From positions 1,116,001 to 1,180,000 of the forward strand of contig NW_025767546.1 of the NCBI RefSeq assembly GCF_003918875.1: a DNA stretch of 64,000 nt. Reading direction: 5' to 3'. Below the pieces are notes generated by a model. That model did not search any database. It saw nothing but the letters and a program-made list of their open reading frames with translations, and had not been told where the DNA came from. The position numbers and the translations under genes were made by a program. Below, piece after piece: positions 27,499-61,091 of the stretch; position 1 is the stretch's first letter, and every line of letters begins with the position of its first letter. The stretch is from Haliotis rubra (Eukaryota).

Positions 27499-30400
27499 CT
27501 ATTTGTCCTTCTTGGCTTCAATAACACCATTAGCCGTTACGACGCTACCGTTCCTCTTGTGGCCCCGTGTAGTACCATTTGCAACTTTTCCATTGGCGAC
27601 CTGGGCCTTTGACTCTCCTCCCTGCAGCACAAGCAATTTGTGATGTAGACATGTGAATCAGTAACTGATGGACACGACTTGTAATAAGATGGTTTAGCAG
27701 GCAATGGTTTGATCTGATTAAGACAAAAATGATCTTTGAAGAAATGCTGTATTTTTATTGTGAAAAAGCTGTATCAGGACATACTGTCTTGATTAATTTA
27801 AGCAGGTTTTAAGAAGAAATACTTTTCATCCTTCAAGCTCCAACAAGTTTAAATTGAAAATGAGCTTGATGTTTTTACACCCATGAAAACTGTGTGACTA
27901 TATGGGTCAAGTTCCCCAATCCCTTGTACTTACTGACAGGTCCACTGTGAATGGCTATAAACATGATCTTTGGACTCCTATATACACCTACCCATAATAC
28001 AGCATAGTAACCCTTACCCATTGTATAACCTAATACCTACCCATAATACAGCATAGTAACCCTCACCCATTGTATAACCTAATACCTACCCATAATACAG
28101 CATAGTACCACAGATAGCATAACCCTCACCCATTGTATAACCTAATACCTACCCATAATACAGCATAGTACCACAGATAGCATAGCCCTCACCCATTGTA
28201 TAACCTAATACCTACCCATAATACAACATAGTACCACAGATAGCATAACCCTCACCCATTGTATAACCTAATACCTACCCATAATACAGCATAGTACCAC
28301 AGATAGCATAACCCTCACCCATTGTATAACCTAATACCTACCCATAATACAGCATAGTACCACAGATAGCATAACCCTCACCCATTGTATAATAATACCT
28401 ACCCATAATACAGCATAGTACCACAGATAGCATAACCCTCACCCATTGTATAACCTAATACCCACCCATAATACAGCATAGTACCACAGATAGCATAACC
28501 CTCACCCATTGTATAACCTAATACCTACCCATAATACAGCATAGTACCACAGATAGCATAACCCTCACCCATTGTATAACCTAATACCTACCCATAATAC
28601 AGCATAGTACCACAGATAGCATAACCCTCACCCATTGTATAACCTAATACCTACCCATAATACAGCATAGTACCACAGATAGCATAACCCTCACCCATTG
28701 TATAACCTAATACCTACCCATAATACAGCATAGTACCACAGATAGCATAACCCTCACCCATTGTATAACCTAATACCTACCCATAATACAGCATAGTACC
28801 ACCAATAGCATAACCCTCACCCATTGTATAACCTAATACCTACCCATAATACAGCATAGTACCACCAATAGCATAACCCTCACCCATTGTATAACCTAAT
28901 ACCTACCCATAATACAGCATGGTACCACAGATAGCATAACCCTCACCCATTGTATAACCTAATACCTACCCATAATACAGCATGGTACCACAGATAGCAT
29001 AACCCTCACCCATTGTATAACCTAATACCTACCCATAATACAGCATGGTACCACCAATAGCATAACCCTCACCCATTGTATAACCTAATACCTACCCATA
29101 ATACAGCATGGTACCACCAATAGCATAACCCTCACCCACTGTATAACCTAATACCTACACATAATACAGCATAGTACCACCAATAGCATAACCCTCACCC
29201 ATTGTATAACCTAATACCTACCCATAATACAGCATGGTACCACCAATAGCATAACCCTCACCCATTGTATAACCTAATACCTGCCCATAATACAGCATGG
29301 TACCACCAATAGCATAACCCTCACCCACTGTATAACCTAATACCTGCCCATAATACAGCATGGTACCACCAATAGCATAACCCTCACCCATTGTATAACC
29401 TAATACCTGCCCATAATACAGCATGGTACCACCAATAGCATAACCCTCACCCACTGTATAACCTAATACCTGCCCATAATACAGCATGGTACCACCAATA
29501 GCATAACCCTCACCCATTGTATAACCTAATATCGTACCTACCCTTAACACAGCATAGTACCACATAGCATAACTCTCACCCACTGTATCACATAATACCT
29601 ACCCATAACTAAAGCATATAACCACCCATTGTGAAGTATATTACCCATCTCAAATGGAGCATAGTACCAACCCATTATCCAGCATAATACTCACCCATAC
29701 TAAAGCCTAATACCTAACCATAATAAAGCATAATACCCAATACAGCATAATACCCACCCATAATAAAGCCTAATGTCTCAACCATTATCAAGCCTAATGC
29801 CCACCCTTAAAAATGCATAAGACCCAGCAATAAAGACACTACTATCCAAGTATTTCTGAACTGTAAGTAACCAACCCACAACCATTTCCAGCACTATCAT
29901 GAGAACCATGAGATAACTGTCCTGATGAGGTAACCAACCTCCATCCCCAGAGTCACTGTTCTCTAAGTATGGAAAATCATGTTTTGCCATCAATACTGAA
30001 CCGTCGTGGTGAGGACACCAAGCTGTCCTCAGAGGAAGCAAAGTTTGGGGTCATGGATTTACCTTGGTCTTGGCTGATCGAGATTTCAAGTAGGTGTGGA
30101 AGTAGAAGTTGAGAAACAGAAGAAGAATGGTGAATGCGTAAAATATCAACGCCCAGTGTAGAGCTTCCGGGAAGTCGCAACCTTTACCCAGCGACTGAAC
30201 AGCATGCACGATTCCGGTCACAAACTGAATCTAAAATGGCACAAAAAACAAAAAGCGTAAAAAACAAATTTACCTTTGATTTAGACGTGGGCTTTTTCTT
30301 GAGGTATGCTTGGATGTAAAAGTTGATAAATAGGGTGATAATTGTTATTCCATAGACTAGGCCCGCATACTGCATCCAATTGGGAAAGTCGCACTCTATT

Positions 30401-33400
30401 AACAATCCTTGGATTCCGTACACCATTCCGATAAAGAATTGGAGCTACAAGCAGAAGAGAAATACGCATGCATAAAGGACGTGCCGCAGCACCAAGCTTG
30501 CTTTAGGTCTAGCAATCAGTGAGGATTCATTCACCATTATTTACTGTTACATGGAAGAACGTGAACATTGAACCATGCCTGTCAATATTGTACACTATGT
30601 TAGTTTCATGTAAACCAATGAAAGTCAGGTTGGAAGATATTGCGATATGACAAGGACAAGGAAATAACCTTTTTTACAATGTATGTACATGAGAAAGAGG
30701 AGCATTCTTAATTCCATTTTCAAAATACATAATTTTGTGTTGATTTTTGGACTTCATTTTGATTTCAGTAATTACAATTTGTATCTTATACATACGGTAA
30801 ACTGCCATTGTCATATCATAAGGTTGACGCAGGAATGTATGACTGGAAGTGACAGATAGGAAATGGAATTCCTGGCATGCCTACACAAGATAATCGAAGG
30901 GAGTATGAAACCAGATGTTGCTACCATATTAACATATCTTCTGAACTAGCCATAAAAATTCGCGAATGTATTTATTGGACACACAAAGTTTTCAAGCAGA
31001 GCACAAGTGTGGGTGCAAAAACATGGAAAGTTTTCAAAAGAAACTATTTTAGAAAACATTCCCACACAGATTTCAACTCATTCAGACAGACACATTTCAA
31101 AGGAGAGCACACTTTGAAACACACTTTGTTTCATTTAATTTACCAACTTTCAAACTCTCTGGTTTTAACGAGGATGGTAGGTCAGGGTATTTTTCTGAGA
31201 AGCATTTGACTTTTGTTGAACAGCGCATAAATGTATTAGTATGAGGTGCATTACATCAAGCTTCAGGATCTGTTAGATCAAGCATTAGTTTATAAGAAGC
31301 AGAAGCACCAGCCTAGCACTAGCCATTGCTGATTGAAAGAGGAGAGAAGCAAGAAGAAAGCAAGGGTAAGAGAGGATATCATTGCATGAAACCTACGTGG
31401 CCATGTTGTTTCTGGTTAAACTGATAATCATAACAGTAAATGATGCCCCAAAACAGCCTGATCCATCAAATTGATGATGATGCACAAGTTCTCATTTCGA
31501 TTTTAAAAGTTGTTTTAGTTTCACATTTTCTAAATAGACGTATTCTTGTTGATGTTTTCATGAGACCTCATAGGGATATTACTCATGATCTGGGCATGGT
31601 CTGTCAGTCACCATAGAGCACAGCTTGGTTAGCCAACCTTTGGGCTAAACACTTGATATCCTGATGACCTACCAGTCAATGTTTATTAAGACATTGCACC
31701 TAACTCTAGACCACAGTTAAATTCACAAGAAGAAAACAGACCAGCCATTGGTCACAATGACTACCACTCATTTACAGTGGTGACTGGGTGCCTGAATCGC
31801 ATTTAATGCCTCTGAACAATTAGTTCTATGATGGCTTCTTATCTCAGGTGCCATTGTACAAAGTGATCTTAGCATTAAGGTGATCATAACTCCTATGGCT
31901 TAACATAGACTCGGCGGTGGGATAGCCTAGTGGTTAAAGCGTTGACTCGTCACGCCGAAGGCCCGGGTTCGATTCCCCACATGGGCACAATGTGTTAAGC
32001 CCATTTCTTGTGTCCCCCGCCGTGATATTGCTGGAATATTGCTAAAAGCGGCGTAAAACTAAACTCAGTCAGTCAGTAACATAGACTCACAACAGTTTTA
32101 ACATTGATGTTGCTTTGTACAACGGTACCTAGTGTGGGATATATAGCCATTGTGATGTGGCTTGTGTTCTCAGGTAGCCAATAAGCACAGGTATGGTGCA
32201 AACAAACCAAGGATTATGATTAGTGCAAATGTGGGATAATTTCATTAGATCCTGGCACAGCAAAGGGAGACAACTCTGTTTAATGAATTAAAGCTACCAC
32301 CACTGGGCCATATTTACCTCAAGTGGGTAGTGCGTGGTAGGGTAGAATCACTATCCATCTTGTCTAAGTGGATCAAAGTGGATAGTGATGCCCGGAGGAG
32401 TCTAGTGCAGGATGGGGCTACAGAAGCAGGTACCCAAAGCACAAGGCTGTCATAGAGCTAAGGTGGACATAACTCGGATACTGTAGCATAGGCCTTACAA
32501 CAGTCCTGGTGCTAAGATCATTTTGTGCAACAGGACCATGAAGGACGAAGGATGGGCTACAGAAGGTGGTGGTGGAAATACAGGACGATAAATGCACGTA
32601 AAAGGAAACTAAGGGATATATGGAGGAAAGTAATGGATAATATGTCACTAGGGAAAGTAAACAATATACGAGGGATAATAAACCCAATAACACAGTAAAG
32701 ATGTATCTACAAACATGGTTTCTATGTAAAACTTGATGCTAGGCAAGCTTGTCTGCTAACAACACTAGGTTTGCATGCGTACTTCAATATCCATTGCTAG
32801 CTCCATTCTTACAAGGAAACTAAGGAGAAACCACTCTGTGATGGTATATCATCTTCACAAATGTGACATATGAAAATGCAGATTAATCTTCACTCCACAC
32901 AGGATTCATAACTGACAGAATGTGGAGGTAACCTGTTGTCATGACATACCATCACCCTGATTAATGAACAAATGTTATATATCAGAATACAAAACTAGGC
33001 TGCATTGGTGGATCCAGAGGGGGGGTTCAGGTTCCCACCCCCACCCCCGAAAATGACTTAAGACCACATTGAAGATTTTTGGGGGGGGTTCAGGGTGTTC
33101 GAAAAAAAACCCACCAACCCCCCCACCCTCGAAATTCCAGGATCCGCCTATGGGCTGGACTATTTCTCAAAACAAGAAAATGAAGTGTACTAAAAAGTAA
33201 ATGAATAAAAACTAAATGTTACAAAATGGGATAAAATGGATTAAAACAAGGTTAAATTATGAATTGAAAATATTACAAAATAGGTCAGGAAGGAAGAGAT
33301 GGGAAAAACAAGCAAAACATTTATATCATTTGCAAAATATCTCACTAAGTACGATCAAGATTAGAATTAGTAACCCATGCTTGTCGTAAGAAGCAACTAA

Positions 33401-36400
33401 CAGGATCGGGTGGTCAGGCTCACTGACTCCCAGTTGCATAGATCCATGCTCATACTGTTGATAATTCTATTGTCTGGTCCAAATTCGATTATTTTTAGAC
33501 CACCACCATATAGCTGGAATATTGCTGAGTGTGGCATTAAACAATAAAGAAAGAAAACAAACCAAACATTCAAGTATATGCTCTACAGGCAAAAACACTC
33601 TATGGCAACTCAACTAGAAGCATCTTTGTCACTGTGAATCATGGATCATGGAAGTCCGTCAAGATCCGGGTTAGAATTGGTCTTCAGTAACCCATGCTTA
33701 TCGTAAGAGGCAACTAACGGGATCGGGTGGTCACTATCCCGACACAAAGAATTAAAACATTCCATCACCTGTCACTTCAGAATGACCTTTACTCTGACCG
33801 ATTCCAAATGCTGGACATTGTCTACATCTCACTTAAATGGGATAAACATTTGAAAGGAAGAGATTTTCAGAGCCTATGGGATGTAATTAAGTACAATTTT
33901 AGCCATTTATTGGCGATTCCAGAATTTCCTTTTTTCATATTTCATATTCTGAATCACCCCCATTTTCAAACTAGTGCTGGTAAATTTAAGAATGCAGTTT
34001 AAGCATTTGCTTTTGGATATACAAATGTTGACTTCCTGTCAGTTATTTCATTCGGCTGGTTGAAGTTTGCAGAAGACGTCTCTGACGTGACATGTAATGT
34101 TATGTCCTAAGACTTATTGCTTTGCAGAAGCAAGAACTAAGATCTGATTAATATGAAATTTCCCTTCAACAGTGTAACCTGCATATGAACAAAACTATGC
34201 AAAGATGTGGCATCAACTAACAACAGAATACTCTAAACGGTAAACGTAGCGATGACACAAAAAGAAAGAGCTTCAAAATCTGATCATGAATTATTGAAAA
34301 CAAACAGCACTAAACACCAAATAAGTGGTCAAATAGCTAATGTAGGAAGAATTAATTCTAACCACATTTACAATCTACACTATCTACCAAGTTAATAACT
34401 ATCAAAGTTAATGCAGAAGTTCATCTGGGTCAATTCCAACGAAATGGACCTAACATTTTTCAGACAGTGGTCTACCCAGAATGCATGGACATACAGGTGT
34501 ATCACTCATCTTGCCCACAAACTTCAGGATCCCTTGGGCTTTTTTAGAATAGTAATATGTAAAATTATCAAAACCAATGGCTCTTATCCCTGCCATGAAG
34601 TTGTAATCAGTGCTTTCTGCTGATAGCAAGGTGTCCTTGAACTATAACAAGTGGCCTTGACCTTTATCTACATTCCAGTATGGAGTGAGCGAGAAACACA
34701 CTGCACTTTGTGTTATGGGGAAACCAATGGACTGAGAATGCTGACACATGCATGCCCTTGTGGTACACTCAAGACAGCTGCCCACACTCGCATGTCCAGC
34801 AGGATTGGGTGACCCAATTTCAGTTGGTGCCAGAAAATCTGATACATTATTCCATCAAATAATGATGTGTGATGGTGCACAATCCTGCCACTCATGTGTC
34901 AGCTATCTCAGCCCTACACCGGTCAACAGCATGCAGTAACAGTCAAACAAGGACTCACCAGTTGGAGTTTGGTCAGGTAGCGCTTCCACCAAAGGTATTT
35001 TTGGTACTCTGGTCCAAGAGCCGACACGCCGTAGTATGTGTACATCACAACATGGATGAATGAGTTGATCATGGCACCGAAGAAGGCTGGAAAGTCAACA
35101 TTTACAGGAAGGTCAAATCAATTTATTGGACAATTATCAAAGATTATAATGCATAAGCCATAGGCTTAAAAAGACCTTCTCCTCAAATACACTCTTCTTT
35201 GTCATTAAGATTTTGTTCATTTATTACTAGTGTAGGATTGAGATTTCTATCATGGTGTTAACTAATATTACAAAAACAAAGATCCTCCACTTCTTAATTT
35301 TAGGTTGCCCCTCTCAAAATCATTATTCTTTTTTTTTAAACATATCTTTGTTCTCGTCTTGTTTTCAAACTTGAATGCGTGACCCTAAATTGAGCATGTA
35401 TTTCAAAATTTTGTTTTTAATGAAATCATCCACACACAAAAACATCAGTCCAATAAAAGATCTTGAACGAAAATATCTTGTACCCTGTGTGTATTCAGTA
35501 AAAGAATAGAGTTGGTTCAATATGTTCTGGTATACTCACACTGTCCGCCGGCCACCCACTTGATGCCGATCCACCAGATGGGAAACATGGAGGCGTGGTG
35601 GTACACGTGCAGGAAACTCACTTGGTTGTCCTTCTTCCGCAGCATGATGAAGAATATAGTGTCCAACATCTCCACACACTTGGAGAAGTAAAACCACCAC
35701 AGAGCACTGGCTATCTGGAGGCCAAACACAGACACGTTACACAGGCTCTCACAGACAATACAGGCTGATAACAGACACGTTACACAGGCACTCACAGACA
35801 CGTTACACAGGCACTCGCAGACAATACAGGCTGATAACAGACACGTTACACAGGCACTCACAGACAATACAGGCTGATAACAGACACGTTACACAGGCAC
35901 TCACAGACACGTTACACAGGCACTCACAGACAATACAGGCTGATAACAGACACGTTACACAGGCACTCACAGACAATACAGGCTGATAACAGACACGTTA
36001 TACAGGCACTCGCAGACAATACAGGCTGATAACAGACACATTGTACAGGCACTCACAGACAATACAGGCTGATAACAGACACGCTACACAGGCTGATAAC
36101 AGACAATACAGGCTGATAACAGACACGCTACACAGGCACTCACAGACCCGCACAGGCACTCGCAGACAATACAGGCTGATAACAGACATGTTACACAGGC
36201 ACTCGCAGACAGTACAGGCTGATAACAGAATACACGTTACACAGGCATAACAGACACAGGCACTCACAGGCGTTACACGGGCACTGCAGACAATACAGGC
36301 TGATAACAGACACGTTACACAGGCACTCGCAGACAGTACAGGCTGATAACAGACACGCTACACAGGCACTCACAGACAACACAGGCTCGTGAGATAACAG

Positions 36401-38963
36401 ACAGACATTACACAGGCACTTTCGCAGACAATACAGGCTGATAACAGACACATTTACACAGGCACTCACAGACACGCTACACAGGCACTTGCAGACAATA
36501 CAGGCTGATAACAGACACGTTACACAGGCACTCGCAGACACAGTACAGGCTGATAACAGACATTACACAGGCACTCACAGACACGTTACACAGGCACTCG
36601 CAGACAATACAGGCTGATAACAGACACGTTACACAGGCACTCACAGACAATACAGGCTGATAACAGACACGTTACACAGGCACTCACAGACAATACAGGC
36701 TGATAACAGACACGTTACACAGGCACTCACAGACACGTTACACAGGCACTCGCAGACAATACAGGTTGATAACAGACACGCTACACAGGCACTCACAGAC
36801 AATACAGGCCAATAACAGACATAACACTCACAGACAATACAGGGCAATAGCAGACATGTACCAGTTCTAACAATTTACAATACAGGCTGATAACAGACCG
36901 CTACACAGGCACTCACAGACAATAAAAGCAACACACTGACATGTGCCAGTTCTAACAATTTATAATTGACCACCATAGCTGCACCTACTAAATTTCACCT
37001 GCTCAACCAACTAAAAGCAACACACTGACATGCATAAACTACTAACTACTACTACTATGACCACCACTACTAATACTACTACTAAATACTACTACTAAAN
37101 NNNNNNNNNNNNNNNNNNNNNNNNNNNNNNNNNNNNNNNNNNNNNNNNNNNNNNNNNNNNNNNNNNNNNNNNNNNNNNNNNNNNNNNNNNNNNNNNNNNN
37201 NNNNNNNNNNNNNNNNNNNNNNNNNNNNACTACTGTCTTACCTTCATTTCACCATGGTCGTTGGTGTAGTTGACCGGCTGACAAGAATAACTATAATTTA
37301 ACTTTGTTGAATACCATAGAAGCTGAAACAGGAAAGAAATTACTTTGCAGTCATAAATATAATAAAAAAAACAATATCTCAACATTACTGCACAAACAAT
37401 TTCATTTCTATAAACAGTGCATACAATTTTCTTCACATTGGTACAAAGTGAAACTATAATGTTGTTCTGATCTAAGACTAGGACTGTTGTCTTCTTAACA
37501 CATGCCAATACTGAAACATGCATTACTATAGAAATAAGAGATGATTTAATGACTATATTTCCACTACATTGCTCATGTAATATTAGCTTTATGTGTGAGC
37601 AATGACAGACTTCTTCAAGTCTCTAAAATCCACAAATTATTGACACAAACTTACCTGTGAGCATATATGAAAGTTCATCACAATTAAACCAAAATTGTAG
37701 AAAAATAACGTCCATTTGAATTTAAACGGCTCTCTGTCTTTCATTATTTTTGGCCCAACCCATACTGCAAACAAGTACAATGCTGTGATGGCTAGTGTGG
37801 GTGTGTAGCTTTGCATTAAAAACCAGTCCTTGACTCGGTCATCTGGAAAAGAGCAGAAAAACACACATCACACACACAATAAATATTACCGCTGATAACC
37901 CAAATAAAATACTTGATAGCAATGCACATTTTAAGCCCATGTCTTACTAATGGATTCTGCTTTAGTGTGTTAGACATAACGTGTGTTTCATAAGTGTGGA
38001 AAGATCAAACAGCATTTCAGCTGCAATAATGGTGTACAGTGGCCATACAGAGGCAGGCGTCAACTGTATTTGAAGAACATCCAGTTAAAGAGATCAATAA
38101 ATTTTTCAATCCAATGGGCTCAAAAGCTTTCTACTTTTCAGCCCATGTACTGAATAACAAAGGAGGCTTAAAAATGTGCAGCCTTTGTACACTCTTTTCA
38201 CTAATTTAGGGTATGTGACCCTTACGTTTTTACATAAACCAAACAATTTTAAAACAAATGGACTCGTCAATTAAAAAGTCTACAACCATTCAATTAAACG
38301 CCAATAATTAGGATTTTAATCTATCCAAGAGAAAATAACAAATGTACCCTGAAAAGATTTGTTCCGTTAGTGGCACATGTCAATAAATTAATTAGTACAA
38401 TGAGCATTAGTTTATGATAACGTGAAGTAACACCAGAAACCTGTACTCCAAACACAGTGGGGAATAATACTTCTTTTATTTATGGATCAGAAAATTGATT
38501 CAATTTCAAAGTAAGTGCCCTCCCCCCTCCCCTCATGTCATGTACAAAATCAATTACCCCTCGCCCCTTTCCCATAATTTTAAAGCATTATTTTTTAATA
38601 TAATTAATATAATTATGTACAAAATTGCAGACCCCCTAGTACATGTGTACAGAATTGCTGACCCCCACCTCCCCAGAACAAAATGGGTGATCCCCTTCCT
38701 TCTCCTCACCCCACCCTCCCCCAACCACCTTAAAATCACTATCATCCCCTAGCCATAAATTATGAATCGTCCCCAAGTGAATAAATCTGCCCATATACAA
38801 ACACGCTATTTCTTGTCAGGATGTTCAGTAAGTGCACATTGTGAAATGGGAACACAATATGTCTCAATAATGGTGTTACAGACACACAACACCAACCTGT
38901 TCGTGTTAGTGCCCATGCATAGAACTTCTGAAAATGTTCAACTTTATCTGTAATCAGCTCCAT
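27499..38963 (-). CDS. ELOVL4: Very-long-chain fatty acid elongase, ELOVL4-like (gene A), with mutually exclusive exon 7a/7b
   Basis: Coding exons (minus): 38897-38963, 37655-37842, 37242-37322, 35540-35714, 34959-35086, then 30274-30444 or 30063-30230, then 27499-27621. Motifs [44 protein letters not shown], and C-terminal ER-retrieval KKDK*. 309-310 aa; exon sizes 188/81/128 are typical of ELOVL4. Confidence 0.92.
27985..29600 (+). repeat. 63-bp minisatellite (~25 copies) in the last intron of ELOVL gene A
   Basis: Unit TACCTACCCATAATACAGCATAGTACCACAGATAGCATAACCCTCACCCATTGTATAACCTAA; degenerates toward ~29830. Confidence 0.95.
30063..30230 (-). CDS. ELOVL gene A alternative exon 7b (168 nt, phase 0/0)
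   Basis: gtgccattttag|[56 protein letters not shown]|gtaaat; open frame that the ORF track does not show. Confidence 0.9.
30274..30444 (-). CDS. ELOVL gene A alternative exon 7a (171 nt, phase 0/0)
   Basis: ctcttctgcttgtag|[57 protein letters not shown]|gtaaat. Confidence 0.9.
31913..32076 (+). mobile_element. Young family-1 SINE with 12-bp TSD, nested in a small MITE (31846-32130)
   Basis: TSD TAACATAGACTC at 31901-31912 and 32077-32088; host ends AGGTGCCATTGTACAAAG / CTTTGTACAACGGTACCT. Confidence 0.85.
32557..32706 (-). pseudogene. Possible diverged third copy of ELOVL exon 7 (relic or alternative terminal exon)
   Basis: tgtttgtag|[49 protein letters not shown]; F39, Y43-F44-H45 and L48 are in the same register as exon 7b. 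Confidence 0.35.
33003..33152. mobile_element. 150-bp non-autonomous DNA transposon (MITE) with 5-bp TSD
   Basis: TIRs CATTGGTGGATCC / GGATCCGCCTATG, G/C-run-rich interior, GGCTG on both flanks. Confidence 0.7.
33355..33733 (+). mobile_element. Two fragments of a third SINE-like family
   Basis: GTAACCCATGCTT(G/A)TCGTAAGA(A/G)GCAACTAAC..GATCGGGTGGTCA occurs twice (~33370 and ~33687), with tail ATAGCTGGAATATTGCTGAGTGTGGCATTAAAC. A related reverse fragment lies at ~25745-25850. Confidence 0.65.
35727..36930 (+). repeat. Compound minisatellite (23-bp + 20-bp subunits, ~43-bp period) abutting the ELOVL A exon 5 acceptor
   Basis: CAGACACGTTACACAGGCACTCA + CAGACAATACAGGCTGATAA in variable order. 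Confidence 0.93.
37038..37235. other. (ACT)n microsatellite flanking a 129-N assembly gap (37100-37228)
   Basis: Run of N with ACTACT repeats on both sides. Confidence 0.95.
38505..38773 (-). mobile_element. Truncated PIF/Harbinger-type MITE (same family as 59123 and 59514)
   Basis: Reverse-complement similarity to the 59.1-59.8 kb copies; ends CCCCTAGCCATAAATTATGAATCGTCCC. Confidence 0.75.
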
Positions 38964-58700: not shown

Positions 58701-61091
58701 AAACTGTTATACTGTACACTCTTCTTATGGAACAAGATAGAGGGATGATATTTAATTCATCTTTGTACCCTGAATGCTGCATTTCTGCTGTTTTATCACT
58801 GACTGGAGTATGTGTTGTGTTTCAGCTGGCACATGTGTGTTGGTGGTTTTACTTCTCCAAGCTTATAGAGCTGCTAGATACCGTAAGTACTTACTGTAGG
58901 TATTTAGGAGACATGCCTAGTTTATGACTAATAACATTAGATGACACTGGTTTGTATGGAAGGTAACCTTTCATGGCTAATCTGTGCCTTTCTCTAATGT
59001 TCACAGATATCCTTTCAGAGGACATGAGAGAAATAGATTTCATTAACACTTTGACAAACCAATGAAATGACTTCAGGGGGAATCTACATTAGCCAATCAC
59101 TAAGTAGGTTTTTTGAGCCTTAGGGACCGTTCATAATTTATGAGGGGTGGGGGGATGTGATGATGATTTTAAGGGGGTCATCCATTTTGTTCTTGGGAGG
59201 TAGGGGGTTATCAAATTTGTACACATGTTCTAGGGGGTCAGCAATTTTGTACATAAAAATACTTTCAAGTTATGCTTTAAAAATATGGGAAGGGGAGGGG
59301 GCATTGATTTTGTACATGACATGTGGGGGTCACTTACTTTGTACATAAATTTTAGGGGGTCATTCACATTGTACATGCTTCTCCATTAAAATCATCATCA
59401 CCCTCCCTAGCCATAAATTATGAACGGTCCCTTATGGCACAAGATTCAAAATGGTTATTTCCATTTCACACAACACACTATGAAAAATACTTTGACAGTG
59501 GATCATCATCTAAGGGACCGTTCATAATTTATGGCTAGAGGGGTGATGATGATTATTATTTTAAGGGGGGGGGTCACCCGTTTTGTTCTGGGGAGCTAGG
59601 GGGGTCAGCAATTTTGTACATAAAAATATGTTTAAAATTATGCTTGGAAATTATGGGAAGGGGAGGGGCGGTCATTGATTTTGTACATGACATGCAAGGG
59701 GGTCACTTATTTTGCACATAAATTTTAGGGGAGCCATTCACATTGTACATGCTACTCCATAGAAATCATCATCACCCCCAACCCCCCCCTAGCCATAAAT
59801 TATGAACGGTCCCTAATAGAAGACATCAGCTAGTTTGACTAAAATAACTTTAGTTTGAGGTGAAACATTTGTAAACTCTAATCAATTTCTTTCTTGTGTT
59901 GAGAAAGAGAGTGTGGTTTCTGTGACCATGTCCAAGTATTGTGTTATCAGTTTAGTAATATAAGTGGGAGCACCTGACTGACTGTCTTTTCTGCAGGTGT
60001 TTTTCGTTCTACGGAAGAAAGGTAACCAGATCTCATTCCTCCATCTGTACCATCACTCTACTATGCCCATTCTCTGGTGGGCAGGGGCCAGGTTCGTCCC
60101 AGGAGGTGAAGGTCAGTGTCAAACTGTTATGCCACAACAACAACATTAAAAAAATCAGTTGTTTTAAGTTGTCTTTGTCCTGACTCATACGTTATTGCTT
60201 TATCTCCCTTTCCTTTCGAGGTACAGTGGAAACCTCTGTCCTGTTGTTCCCTAATGAACAGTCAAAAATAGCTCACCCCAAATGGGCCTCTCCCTGCCTC
60301 AGTGCCAGCATCCCATGTGACAGCTAGCTGCTTGTCAGTCTCTTGAACTAAGTTGTCTGTTAGCAGTCACTGTTCTCTAGTTGTCATCAATGTCATTATT
60401 TGTTTGGATTTTATGGTGCGTGTAATGAGACCGTGAATGTTGCAGGTTACTTCTCGGCCAGCATCAACTGTTTGATTCATGTGATCATGTACCTGTACTA
60501 CCTCCTGTCTGCCATGGGGCCCAGCATGAAGAAGTACCTGTGGTGGAAGAAGTACATGACCACAATGCAGCTGGTGAGTACTCACATTCACGTCCATGCT
60601 GGTGGGAGTCCCTGGCCATGTACACCCTCCTTGACGAGCTGGAATCTCTTTGAACACTTTTATCTGTTCTGGAAAAACATTGTCAGGATTTTGCTAACCC
60701 AACTTAATATTTGAGTGAGTTCTAAGAAAAATGAGTTATTCGGCTGAGTACTGCTGAAATATTTTCTGTGCCTGATGCACTTTGACGTGACAAATTATCA
60801 CTCCTCTTCCTCTTCCCACAGATGCAGTTCTGGGCCATCCTCGGCCACACCACCTACTCCATTTACCTCGACTGTGGCTACCCCCTCGGCTACAACATCG
60901 GCTTCCTCACCTACATGATCTCACACATCGTCCTCTTCTCCAACTTCTACTACCAGACCTACATCAATAAGTCCCAGCGTCCCACCTCTCTGGAGAACGG
61001 TAGCGCCAAGGCCAAGCAAAAGAATGGCATCATTAACGGCACCGTCCAAAGCGGAGTGACAAATGGCAGTCTGCGGAAGCGGATTGAATGA
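52751..61091 (+). CDS. Very-long-chain fatty acid elongase (gene B; ELOVL4 or ELOVL1/7-related, subfamily uncertain)
   Basis: Coding exons 52751-52808, 54075-54262, 58111-58194, 58826-58882, 59997-60111, 60446-60573, 60822-61091; 299 aa. Motifs [54 protein letters not shown]; C-terminus LRKRIE. Confidence 0.93.
53247..53470. mobile_element. Foldback element: ~55-bp inverted repeats enclosing a tRNA-like (Pol III A/B box) core
   Basis: GGGATTACACTTT.TCA.TAAAGTACAGATTCTAGTACTT and its reverse complement; minus-strand core GGTGGCTGAGCGGGTTAG...GAGTTTGAATCC. Confidence 0.7.
54221..54319 (+). repeat. 49-bp tandem duplication of the ELOVL B exon 3' end plus donor site
   Basis: ...CTCATGCTGCTGTGTATGTACCTGTTTGTTGAGGTAATCCA occurs twice. 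Confidence 0.92.
54340..57210 (+). repeat. 73-bp minisatellite (~39 copies) in an ELOVL B intron
   Basis: Unit CAGGATCTTGTTAACCAAGT(C/T)ATCTAAGGAGGCACATTTTAGACAGGCACAGAGTTGCCTCCATTAGCGGTGT. Confidence 0.96.
57465..57830 (-). mobile_element. 3' fragment of an L2/CR1-group LINE
   Basis: Minus strand reads [11 protein letters not shown]...[10 protein letters not shown] (RT C-terminal motif), followed by a 3' tail GCGCTTTGAGC...GAAAAGGCGCATTACAAAT. Confidence 0.75.
57895..58030 (+). repeat. 21-bp tandem repeat (~6 copies)
   Basis: AGAGTTATTATGTGAG(A/G)ATGT. Confidence 0.9.
59123..59431 (+). mobile_element. PIF/Harbinger (Tourist-like) MITE, copy 1
   Basis: TIR GGGACCGTTCATAATTT / AAATTATGAACGGTCCC; TTA TSD on both sides. 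Confidence 0.9.
59514..59813 (+). mobile_element. PIF/Harbinger (Tourist-like) MITE, copy 2
   Basis: TIR GGGACCGTTCATAATTTATGGCTAG / CTAGCCATAAATTATGAACGGTCCC; TAA TSD on both sides. Confidence 0.9.

Follow-up and report, generated by a model that had tools for sequence, protein, structure and literature searches.

An ELOVL4-like fatty acyl elongase gene of the abalone Haliotis rubra contains two adjacent, homologous versions of one internal exon, and each of its two annotated isoforms carries one of them. The gene lies on the minus strand of a 64,000-nucleotide (nt) stretch of the assembly GCF_003918875.1 (contig NW_025767546.1, positions 1,116,001-1,180,000, forward strand), which is called the window here and to which all positions below refer. 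The two exons, termed a and b (7a and 7b in an earlier, sequence-only reading of this DNA), are real alternative cassettes of one ELOVL4-like gene, and a mutually exclusive switch between them is well supported. That the pair is real, conserved and mutually exclusive can be stated with high confidence. The fuller explanation is also considered likely as a whole: a tandem-duplicated, mutually exclusive pair of old and conserved origin, kept apart by steric exclusion, whose products probably differ in the acyl chains that they handle.

The exon pair and its gene

The pair and its spacer are placed as follows.

30274..30444, minus strand: cassette exon a, 171 nt, 57 codons, phase 0/0, encoding residues 214-270 of isoform X1
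30063..30230, minus strand: cassette exon b, 168 nt, 56 codons, phase 0/0, encoding the same segment in isoform X2
30231..30273, minus strand: spacer between the cassettes, 43 nt, from the GTAAAT donor of exon a to the TTTTAG acceptor of exon b

On the minus strand, exon a reads, from 30444 to 30274, ...ttgtag CTCCAATTC...AAATCAAAG gtaaat, and exon b, from 30230 to 30063, reads ATTCAGTTT...AAGACCAAG gtaaat; each has its own AG acceptor and AAG/GTAAAT donor. The two peptides agree at 22 of their first 49 residues and at 24 over the full exon, with a nucleotide identity of 55%. Either peptide alone matches Pfam PF01151 (ELO) at profile positions 183-241 of 242 (E-values of 9e-9 and 3e-10; 35.7 and 40.3 bits, with a gathering cut-off of 27), and the similarity between a and b is not a chance resemblance. 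Tandem-duplicated exons are expected to be homologous neighbours, alike in length and identical in phase, each with splice sites of its own, and that is what is found here. The sequence-only reading, which had described two intact homologous exons on the minus strand, is confirmed to the base in its lengths, phase 0/0, 43-nt gap, 22 of 49 identities and splice sites, and its two peptide strings agree with the translated exons. Scanned in all six frames with a profile, the window yields these two copies in the focal gene and one in a neighbouring plus-strand elongase gene, and no third cassette copy in the focal gene.

The remaining coding exons of the gene, in transcript order, are:

38897..38963, minus strand: first coding exon, with the ATG at 38963 (spliced rebuild)
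37655..37842, minus strand: constitutive coding exon 2 (spliced rebuild)
37242..37322, minus strand: constitutive coding exon 3 (spliced rebuild)
35540..35714, minus strand: constitutive coding exon with KxxExxDT and the HVYHH histidine box (motifs and spliced rebuild)
34959..35086, minus strand: constitutive exon before the cassette, with NxxxHxxMYxYY, transmembrane helix 5 (TM5) and the start of TM6, ending in TKLQL at phase 0
27499..27621, minus strand: last coding exon, with the cytosolic tail and KKDK-stop (di-lysine signal), joined to the donor of either cassette

A run of N at 37100-37228 falls inside the intron that follows exon 3 in transcript order and affects no coding exon. The donor at 34959 is joined to exon a or to exon b, and both cassettes are in frame with the last exon at 27621. 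RefSeq isoform X1 (XP_046552397.1, 310 amino acids (aa); P0274) carries exon a, and X2 (XP_046552398.1, 309 aa; P0215) carries exon b, each with a 100% match. The isoforms differ only at residues 214-270, are identical outside the cassette and fall into one 90% cluster. A spliced-alignment script rebuilds both exactly from the window with GT-AG introns only. These models show the two-isoform structure of the H. rubra gene, and they bear out the earlier proposal that the two exons are alternative cassettes of a single gene, since X1 and X2 differ solely there.

All of the ELO motifs listed for elongases (PMC12405942) are present in the protein: HxxHH with Gln at -5, KxxExxDT, NxxxHxxMYxYY and TxxQxxQ. 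The last of these is cut by the junction into the cassette (TKLQL(L/I)Q), and its second Gln is retained by both exons. The protein ends in a di-lysine endoplasmic reticulum retention signal, encoded by the KKDK-stop of the last exon. The best full-length relatives are all labelled ELOVL4 or ELOVL4-like, with PF01151 listed for all, and vertebrate ELOVL4 is about 50% identical; the names of these relatives suggest the assignment of the gene as ELOVL4-like. Between KxxExxDT and the histidine box, where the sequence is highly conserved, the allele in the window has an extra Leu codon at 35640-35642 (minus strand), an in-frame indel. The copy on a second H. rubra contig (XP_046576948/9) lacks this codon, as do H. 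rufescens, H. cracherodii and H. asinina.

Isoforms and transcripts in Haliotis and other molluscs

The same a/b pairs are annotated as X1 and X2 in H. rufescens, H. cracherodii, Dreissena and Saccostrea, and automatic annotation gives RefSeq ELOVL4-like X1/X2 isoforms in Haliotis, Crassostrea/Magallana, Saccostrea, Dreissena, Mytilus, Pomacea, Littorina and other molluscs. The X1 and X2 isoforms of H. rubra, H. rufescens and H. cracherodii contain one cassette each, and both copies occur together in no RefSeq isoform of the Haliotis clusters. Two cDNAs of the razor clam Sinonovacula constricta, QCF41171.1 (Elovl4_a) and QCF41172.1 (Elovl4_b), encode 291 aa each and are identical except in the TM6-TM7 segment, which is the same segment swap as that between abalone X2 and X1. 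The clam naming is crossed, in that Elovl4_a has the b-type cassette of abalone X2 and Elovl4_b the a-type cassette of abalone X1. In the Pacific oyster, the a isoform (298 aa) and the b isoform (295 aa) occur as complete open reading frames (ORFs) on many Logan contigs of 1.2-3 kb, and such full-length ORFs on contigs of this size must come from spliced mRNA. Logan contig L007 (1557 nt) likewise has an uninterrupted ORF with exon a only, from spliced mRNA. No Logan-derived full-length protein among the matches contains both copies. An index of 5.8 billion proteins yielded no junction-spanning abalone fragments (0 candidates for exon a alone and 9 matches for the cassette region of P0274).

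Sequence constraint within Haliotis

Proportions of synonymous (pS) and nonsynonymous (pN) differences were counted by the Nei-Gojobori method between H. rubra, H. rufescens and H. asinina in pairs.

Constitutive exons: pS 0.20-0.41, pN 0.006-0.033
Exon a: pS 0 of about 35 synonymous sites in every pair, pN at most 0.007, P from 9e-6 to 1e-4 per species pair
Exon b: pS 0.03-0.08, pN 0.016-0.032, P from 5e-4 to 2e-3 per species pair

Exon a of H. rubra is identical at 171 of 171 nt in H. rufescens and at 170 of 171 in H. asinina. This comparison, which is of the dN/dS kind that the sequence-only reading had proposed, finds both cassettes intact in the three genomes; pN does not exceed 0.03 and pS is close to 0. 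The counts indicate that both copies are under strong purifying selection, and decay of either copy is ruled out by the conservation pattern. Over the 8 kb between the upstream exon and the 3' end, the block 30043-30542 is the best conserved stretch, with 90-100% identical columns in the three species, and is conserved above the constitutive exons. It reaches about 100 nt 5' of exon a and ends about 20 nt past the exon b donor. Its upstream part is a candidate splicing-regulatory region:

30445..30542, minus strand: conserved end of the upstream intron, 86-96% identical columns in the three Haliotis

Such a pattern of conservation is typical of regulated alternative exons, and the almost frozen synonymous sites point to regulatory information within the exons and the upstream intron. 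Further up the intron, a block of about 400 nt (32560-32975, minus strand) is 72-82% identical in the three Haliotis, far above the surrounding intron, and holds a GCAUGC element complementary to the sequence directly 5' of exon a.

Distribution and age of the pair

Tandem pairs were also found at the following loci. In all loci with the pair, the order is a then b and the lengths are multiples of 3 nt.

H. rufescens (L003): tandem pair, spacer 42 nt
H. asinina (L004): tandem pair, b alone annotated, spacer 43 nt
Mollusc-like locus L001: tandem pair, spacer 61 nt
Mollusc-like locus L002: tandem pair, spacer 65 nt
Chiton Liolophura (L008): tandem pair, spacer 63 nt
Brachiopod Lingula (L009): tandem pair, spacer 59 nt
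Annelid Owenia (L005): tandem pair, spacer 286 nt

The spacer is 42-66 nt across the molluscs and Lingula, compared with 286 nt in Owenia, where two annotated proteins differ only in the cassette. A single copy is found in Octopus bimaculoides (L006; b-like, 57 kb searched), Capitella, a sea urchin and an intronless Lottia gene. With one cassette detectable in O. bimaculoides, exon a appears to have been lost from cephalopods or never to have been present there.

Two of these loci have peculiarities of their own. The ELOVL4-like gene of Lottia gigantea (L012:2001-2867) is a single uninterrupted ORF with a b-type cassette and looks like a retrocopy of the b-isoform mRNA. At L001:8206-8215, the 5' end of exon b is about 10 nt short compared with all others, and the usual acceptor gives a frame with a stop codon; this shortening is either real decay or an assembly error.

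A maximum-likelihood tree built from 76 cassette peptides (51 columns) places the a-type sequences in one clade (support 97/93) that includes the chiton, Lingula and Owenia. A tree that groups all gastropod a and b cassettes is rejected by the approximately unbiased (AU) test (p 0.0017). A gastropod-only origin is therefore rejected, and the duplication is older than the split between gastropods and bivalves. Beyond that split, one origin is favoured because of the common order, phase, short spacer and diagnostic residues, and separate duplications in Owenia, Lingula and the chiton seem less likely. A single origin for the pairs of molluscs and Lingula is very probable on these grounds, and one that also takes in Owenia is probable. 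The duplication thus probably took place before molluscs, brachiopods and annelids separated.

What the cassette encodes

The cassette covers the C-terminal two thirds of TM6 (from the second Gln of TxxQxxQ), the luminal loop with its disulphide Cys, TM7 and the start of the tail. HMMER aligns it to residues 213-270 of ELOVL7, including Q214, C231, F238, I242, F253 and R266. The assignments of tunnel-facing positions below rest on this alignment and are uncertain by 1-2 residues near the loop. In the ELOVL7 structure, Q214 lines the malonyl pocket and F238 and I242 the acyl pocket, C231 is part of a disulphide joining the luminal loops, coenzyme A (CoA) is contacted by F253 and R266, and a portal has been proposed between TM4 and TM7 (bioRxiv 10.1101/2020.11.11.378570). 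Cys99 and the cassette Cys231 of the abalone protein align with C99 and C231 of ELOVL7, the pair that forms the disulphide between loops 2 and 6.

AlphaFold models of both isoforms place TM6 at about 205-228 and TM7 at about 235-261 with similar confidence (predicted local distance difference test scores, pLDDT, of 74-76). Compared with the human ELOVL7 structure 6Y7F, the models have template modelling scores (TM-scores) of 0.87-0.91, a root-mean-square deviation of 2.1-2.2 Å and 40-42% identity, and a seven-helix ELOVL fold is predicted for both. The sequence-only reading had identified the segment as TM6-TM7, which agrees with both the alignment and the models. Alignment and modelling against ELOVL7 place the cassette along one side of both the acyl tunnel and the lateral portal proposed for substrates.

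The two types differ consistently, as a table of type-specific residues in 26 a-type and 31 b-type cassettes shows. At the TM6 position equivalent to ELOVL7 H221, all 26 a-type cassettes have Tyr, and all 31 b-type cassettes have His, as do 16 of 19 non-spiralian sequences. In TM7, types a and b are distinguished by Gly/Ser versus Leu, Val/Ala versus Phe, Gly versus Ala, and Val/Ile versus Phe, and the smaller residues on the TM7 face of type a suggest a roomier pocket. The catalytic or CoA-contacting residues (the Gln, the Cys, the F253 equivalent and the basic tail) are retained in both. Exon b had initially been described as ELOVL4-like and exon a as its diverged variant. This holds in part: type b keeps the ancestral His and Leu, but it has changed at other positions where type a keeps the outgroup residue. 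Each type retains different ancestral residues, and both copies are therefore specialised. Exon b of Haliotis has a further peculiarity. At X2 residues 236-237 (the 30110-30115 region), 5-6 residues after the Cys, it encodes Ala-Leu, conserved in four Haliotis species, where all other cassettes and the outgroups have Trp-Met. The pair aligns with ELOVL4 W246, which is associated with SCA34 (spinocerebellar ataxia 34), and with ELOVL5 G230/W231.

Because the consistent a/b differences are at tunnel-facing positions, the isoforms most likely differ in the acyl chains that they accept or release. This functional difference is suggested by the position of the cassette and by its type-specific residues, and a difference in substrate range is somewhat favoured on that basis. 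It may instead be that the switch is real and the substrate range is unchanged, with the cassettes altering self-association, contacts in the elongation complex, stability, turnover or regulation. The retention of the catalytic and CoA-contact residues in both types would fit such a role. However, the differences between types are located at or beside the equivalents of ELOVL7 F238 and I242 and on the same face of TM7, and the TM6/loop 6/TM7 region sets chain length in yeast Elo2 and Elo3, while a swap between ELOVL5 W231 and ELOVL2 C217 exchanges the preferences of those enzymes (PMC10449689). An unchanged range is accordingly regarded as possible but unlikely.

How exclusion and choice may work

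In the preferred reading, with its two isoforms of differing range, the exon that ends at 34959 would be spliced to exon a or exon b, and either of these to the last coding exon at 27621, to give a product of 310 or 309 aa. Beyond the donor, the spacer contains adenines only at +16, +37 and +42. The putative branch-point A at +16 (UUUAC, window 30258) has a good consensus and lies 15 nt from the exon a donor and 27-28 nt from the acceptor. Both this A and the pyrimidine tract before TTTTAG are conserved in the three Haliotis. With the only plausible branch point 15 nt from the exon a donor, the 43-nt spacer would not be removable as an intron. U1 on the exon a donor and U2/U2AF on the branch point and tract of exon b would not have room side by side, and the choice of one site would block the other. 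A steric block of joint inclusion, judged from these distances and the putative branch point, is fairly likely. That molluscs and Lingula have kept the spacer at 42-66 nt agrees with the steric model. Steric exclusion by a short spacer had been part of the sequence-only reading, and it is consistent with the spacers of these lineages, though not with the longer one of Owenia.

Signals that might govern the choice can be proposed as well. UGCAUG occurs at 30472-30467, 28 nt 5' of exon a, in all three Haliotis, at 26 nt in Lingula, and at 43 and 75 nt in Owenia. No UGCAUG is present within 300 nt of exon a in the chiton, L001 or L002. The motif was spotted after the fact and is put forward as a possible splicing regulator. 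No Rfam match is found in 29800-33100. A stable RNA fold as the cause of the synonymous constraint was rejected, as the 481-nt region folds no better than its shuffles (z +1.41). Two 14-nt complements are present, one between 30541-30528 in the upstream intron and 30136-30123 in exon b, the other between 32785-32772 in a conserved intronic block and 30472-30459 in the upstream intron. About one such pair is expected by chance per 3 kb, and changes among the three Haliotis are wobble-compatible only, none of them compensatory. Docking/selector pairing was rejected on these grounds, and the two complements are leads only.

Such features are relevant to an alternative in which exclusion is due to competing regulators or RNA pairing and the short spacer is a by-product of the tandem duplication. 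Owenia has two single-cassette models despite its long spacer, UGCAUG recurs just 5' of exon a in Haliotis, Lingula and Owenia, the frozen synonymous sites suggest regulator binding inside the exons, and the complement between the upstream intron and exon b could permit pairing. However, the spacer has stayed at 42-66 nt in lineages that parted in the Cambrian, while neighbouring introns differ by kilobases; pairings of 14 nt are near chance level in 3 kb and lack compensatory change; and there is no excess folding energy. As a replacement for steric exclusion, this alternative seems rather improbable. A bolder version of the preferred reading would have an ancient switch (Cambrian or earlier), regulated in molluscs, brachiopods and at least one annelid and not recognised in the literature, in which UGCAUG (Rbfox-type) and exonic signals choose between two acyl-pocket geometries. 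It is offered tentatively, with prospects a little short of even.

Evidence against an exclusive switch

Several observations weigh against an old, sterically enforced and mutually exclusive pair. The 286-nt spacer of Owenia means that steric hindrance is not universal, and another mechanism must act at least there. The AU test leaves separate duplications unrejected in Owenia (p 0.27), Lingula (p 0.12) and the chiton (p 0.07). Exclusivity in abalone is drawn from the RefSeq models alone. Co-inclusion keeps the reading frame, and nonsense-mediated decay would therefore not remove a double-cassette mRNA. Proteins with tandem copies also exist as ab initio genome models in Nucella, Elysia, Sinanodonta, Tegillarca and Biomphalaria pfeifferi; the remaining tandem-copy proteins are genomic read-through ORFs. 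Finally, a UniRef model of Magallana gigas, A0A8W8NFD2 (P0282, 340 aa), links the full exon a to an acceptor that lies some 13 codons inside exon b. The junction in A0A8W8NFD2 is the one expected if the nearest exon b acceptor is sterically unusable.

Two further explanations can be considered. In the first, one exon is a little-used relic and the second RefSeq isoform is splicing noise. The b isoform alone is annotated in H. asinina and in the chiton Liolophura, as such a relic might predict. However, exon a is intact and identical at 170-171 of 171 nt in three Haliotis, H. asinina among them, different classes and phyla have kept both types with their splice sites intact, both clam cDNAs have been cloned, and the two oyster isoforms each turn up in many RNA assemblies; a relic is thus very improbable. 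That both exons are normally co-included in a nine-helix protein is scarcely credible, for although 171 nt would add two helices with frame and topology kept and several automatic gene models contain both copies, those models are ab initio, no Haliotis RefSeq isoform or matched Logan mRNA-derived protein has both, and the 43-nt spacer offers no usable branch point at a workable distance.

Neighbouring features

A second ELO-family gene (59982-61088, plus strand) is arranged head-to-head with the focal gene. It has HLYHH, and its terminal exon contains one TM6-TM7 copy and the stop codon, with no duplicated cassette. Two introns of the focal gene contain minisatellites. The one between exon b and the last exon (28057-29625) has a 63-bp unit in 25 copies with 96% matches and a strong strand skew, and the other (35727-36821) consists of a 43-bp unit family that reaches the acceptor of the histidine-box exon.

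Relation to known systems and significance

Mutually exclusive splicing of adjacent homologous exons is familiar from exons 2 and 3 of alpha-tropomyosin, where the branch point is too near the upstream donor for the spliceosome to assemble. The abalone pair may be analogous, although it is in another gene and phylum and its mechanism is proposed from distances only. Ran et al. are said to have cloned the two S. constricta forms, Elovl4_a and Elovl4_b, in 2019 among "four fatty acyl elongases", in a paper whose title reportedly refers to functional characterisation.

The closest likeness in a mollusc is the alternative oxidase of Crassostrea virginica, whose tandem duplicated exon 10 was called the first in a mollusc (PMC5589949). 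It too is an enzyme gene with a duplicated exon and one copy per mRNA, and there the downstream copy is nearer to other taxa and the upstream copy has changed near functional sites (PMC5589949). However, the oyster exon is terminal and subject to 3' alternative splicing, whereas the abalone exon is an internal cassette with a downstream exon common to both forms. Among elongases, vertebrate ELOVL2 and ELOVL5 and teleost elovl4a and elovl4b have acquired different ranges from one ancestor, with determinants in TM6-loop-TM7. In vertebrates this occurred by duplication of whole genes; in the abalone gene the duplication is confined to one exon, and the choice between the copies is made by splicing. 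Human ELOVL7 (6Y7F) has the same fold, and the abalone protein has all of the catalytic motifs, but ELOVL7 belongs to another subfamily and has a single TM6-TM7 exon product.

Searches of the full-text literature (ELOVL with mutually exclusive exons, mollusc splicing, and clam or bivalve isoforms) found no description of an ELOVL exon switch, and among papers citing the clam elongase work, none of those covered mentions the two Elovl4 forms. Surm et al. 2015 (PMC4550275) enter X1 and X2 of the oyster as separate Elovl sequences and give no exon structure for them, and a 2024 paper states that invertebrates usually have "one sole Elovl4". The sequence-only reading, which knew of no described ELOVL switch of this kind, overstated the novelty. 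The isoforms themselves are not new, being annotated automatically in many molluscs and cloned as cDNAs from the clam; no paper on the exon switch was found, and the gene-level explanation, the age and the constraint pattern appear undescribed in the searchable literature. The exon pair is thus of a familiar kind, in an enzyme family for which none was found described.

Synonymous change is almost absent from both exons, which makes them a clean case of splicing-related constraint on coding sequence. The pair would also be a natural domain swap for the study of elongase specificity, with two TM6-TM7 cassettes that have been apart for about half a billion years in an otherwise identical enzyme, and it narrows the residues of interest to the His/Tyr position of TM6, at 222, and four positions of TM7, at 241, 243, 245 and 246. 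If the explanation is true, splicing in these animals does what vertebrates do with ELOVL paralogues, and the literature, in which the oyster and clam isoforms are listed as separate elongases, has counted isoforms of one gene as different enzymes. Abalone, oysters and clams are aquaculture species, for which the ability to synthesise these fatty acids is of practical importance.

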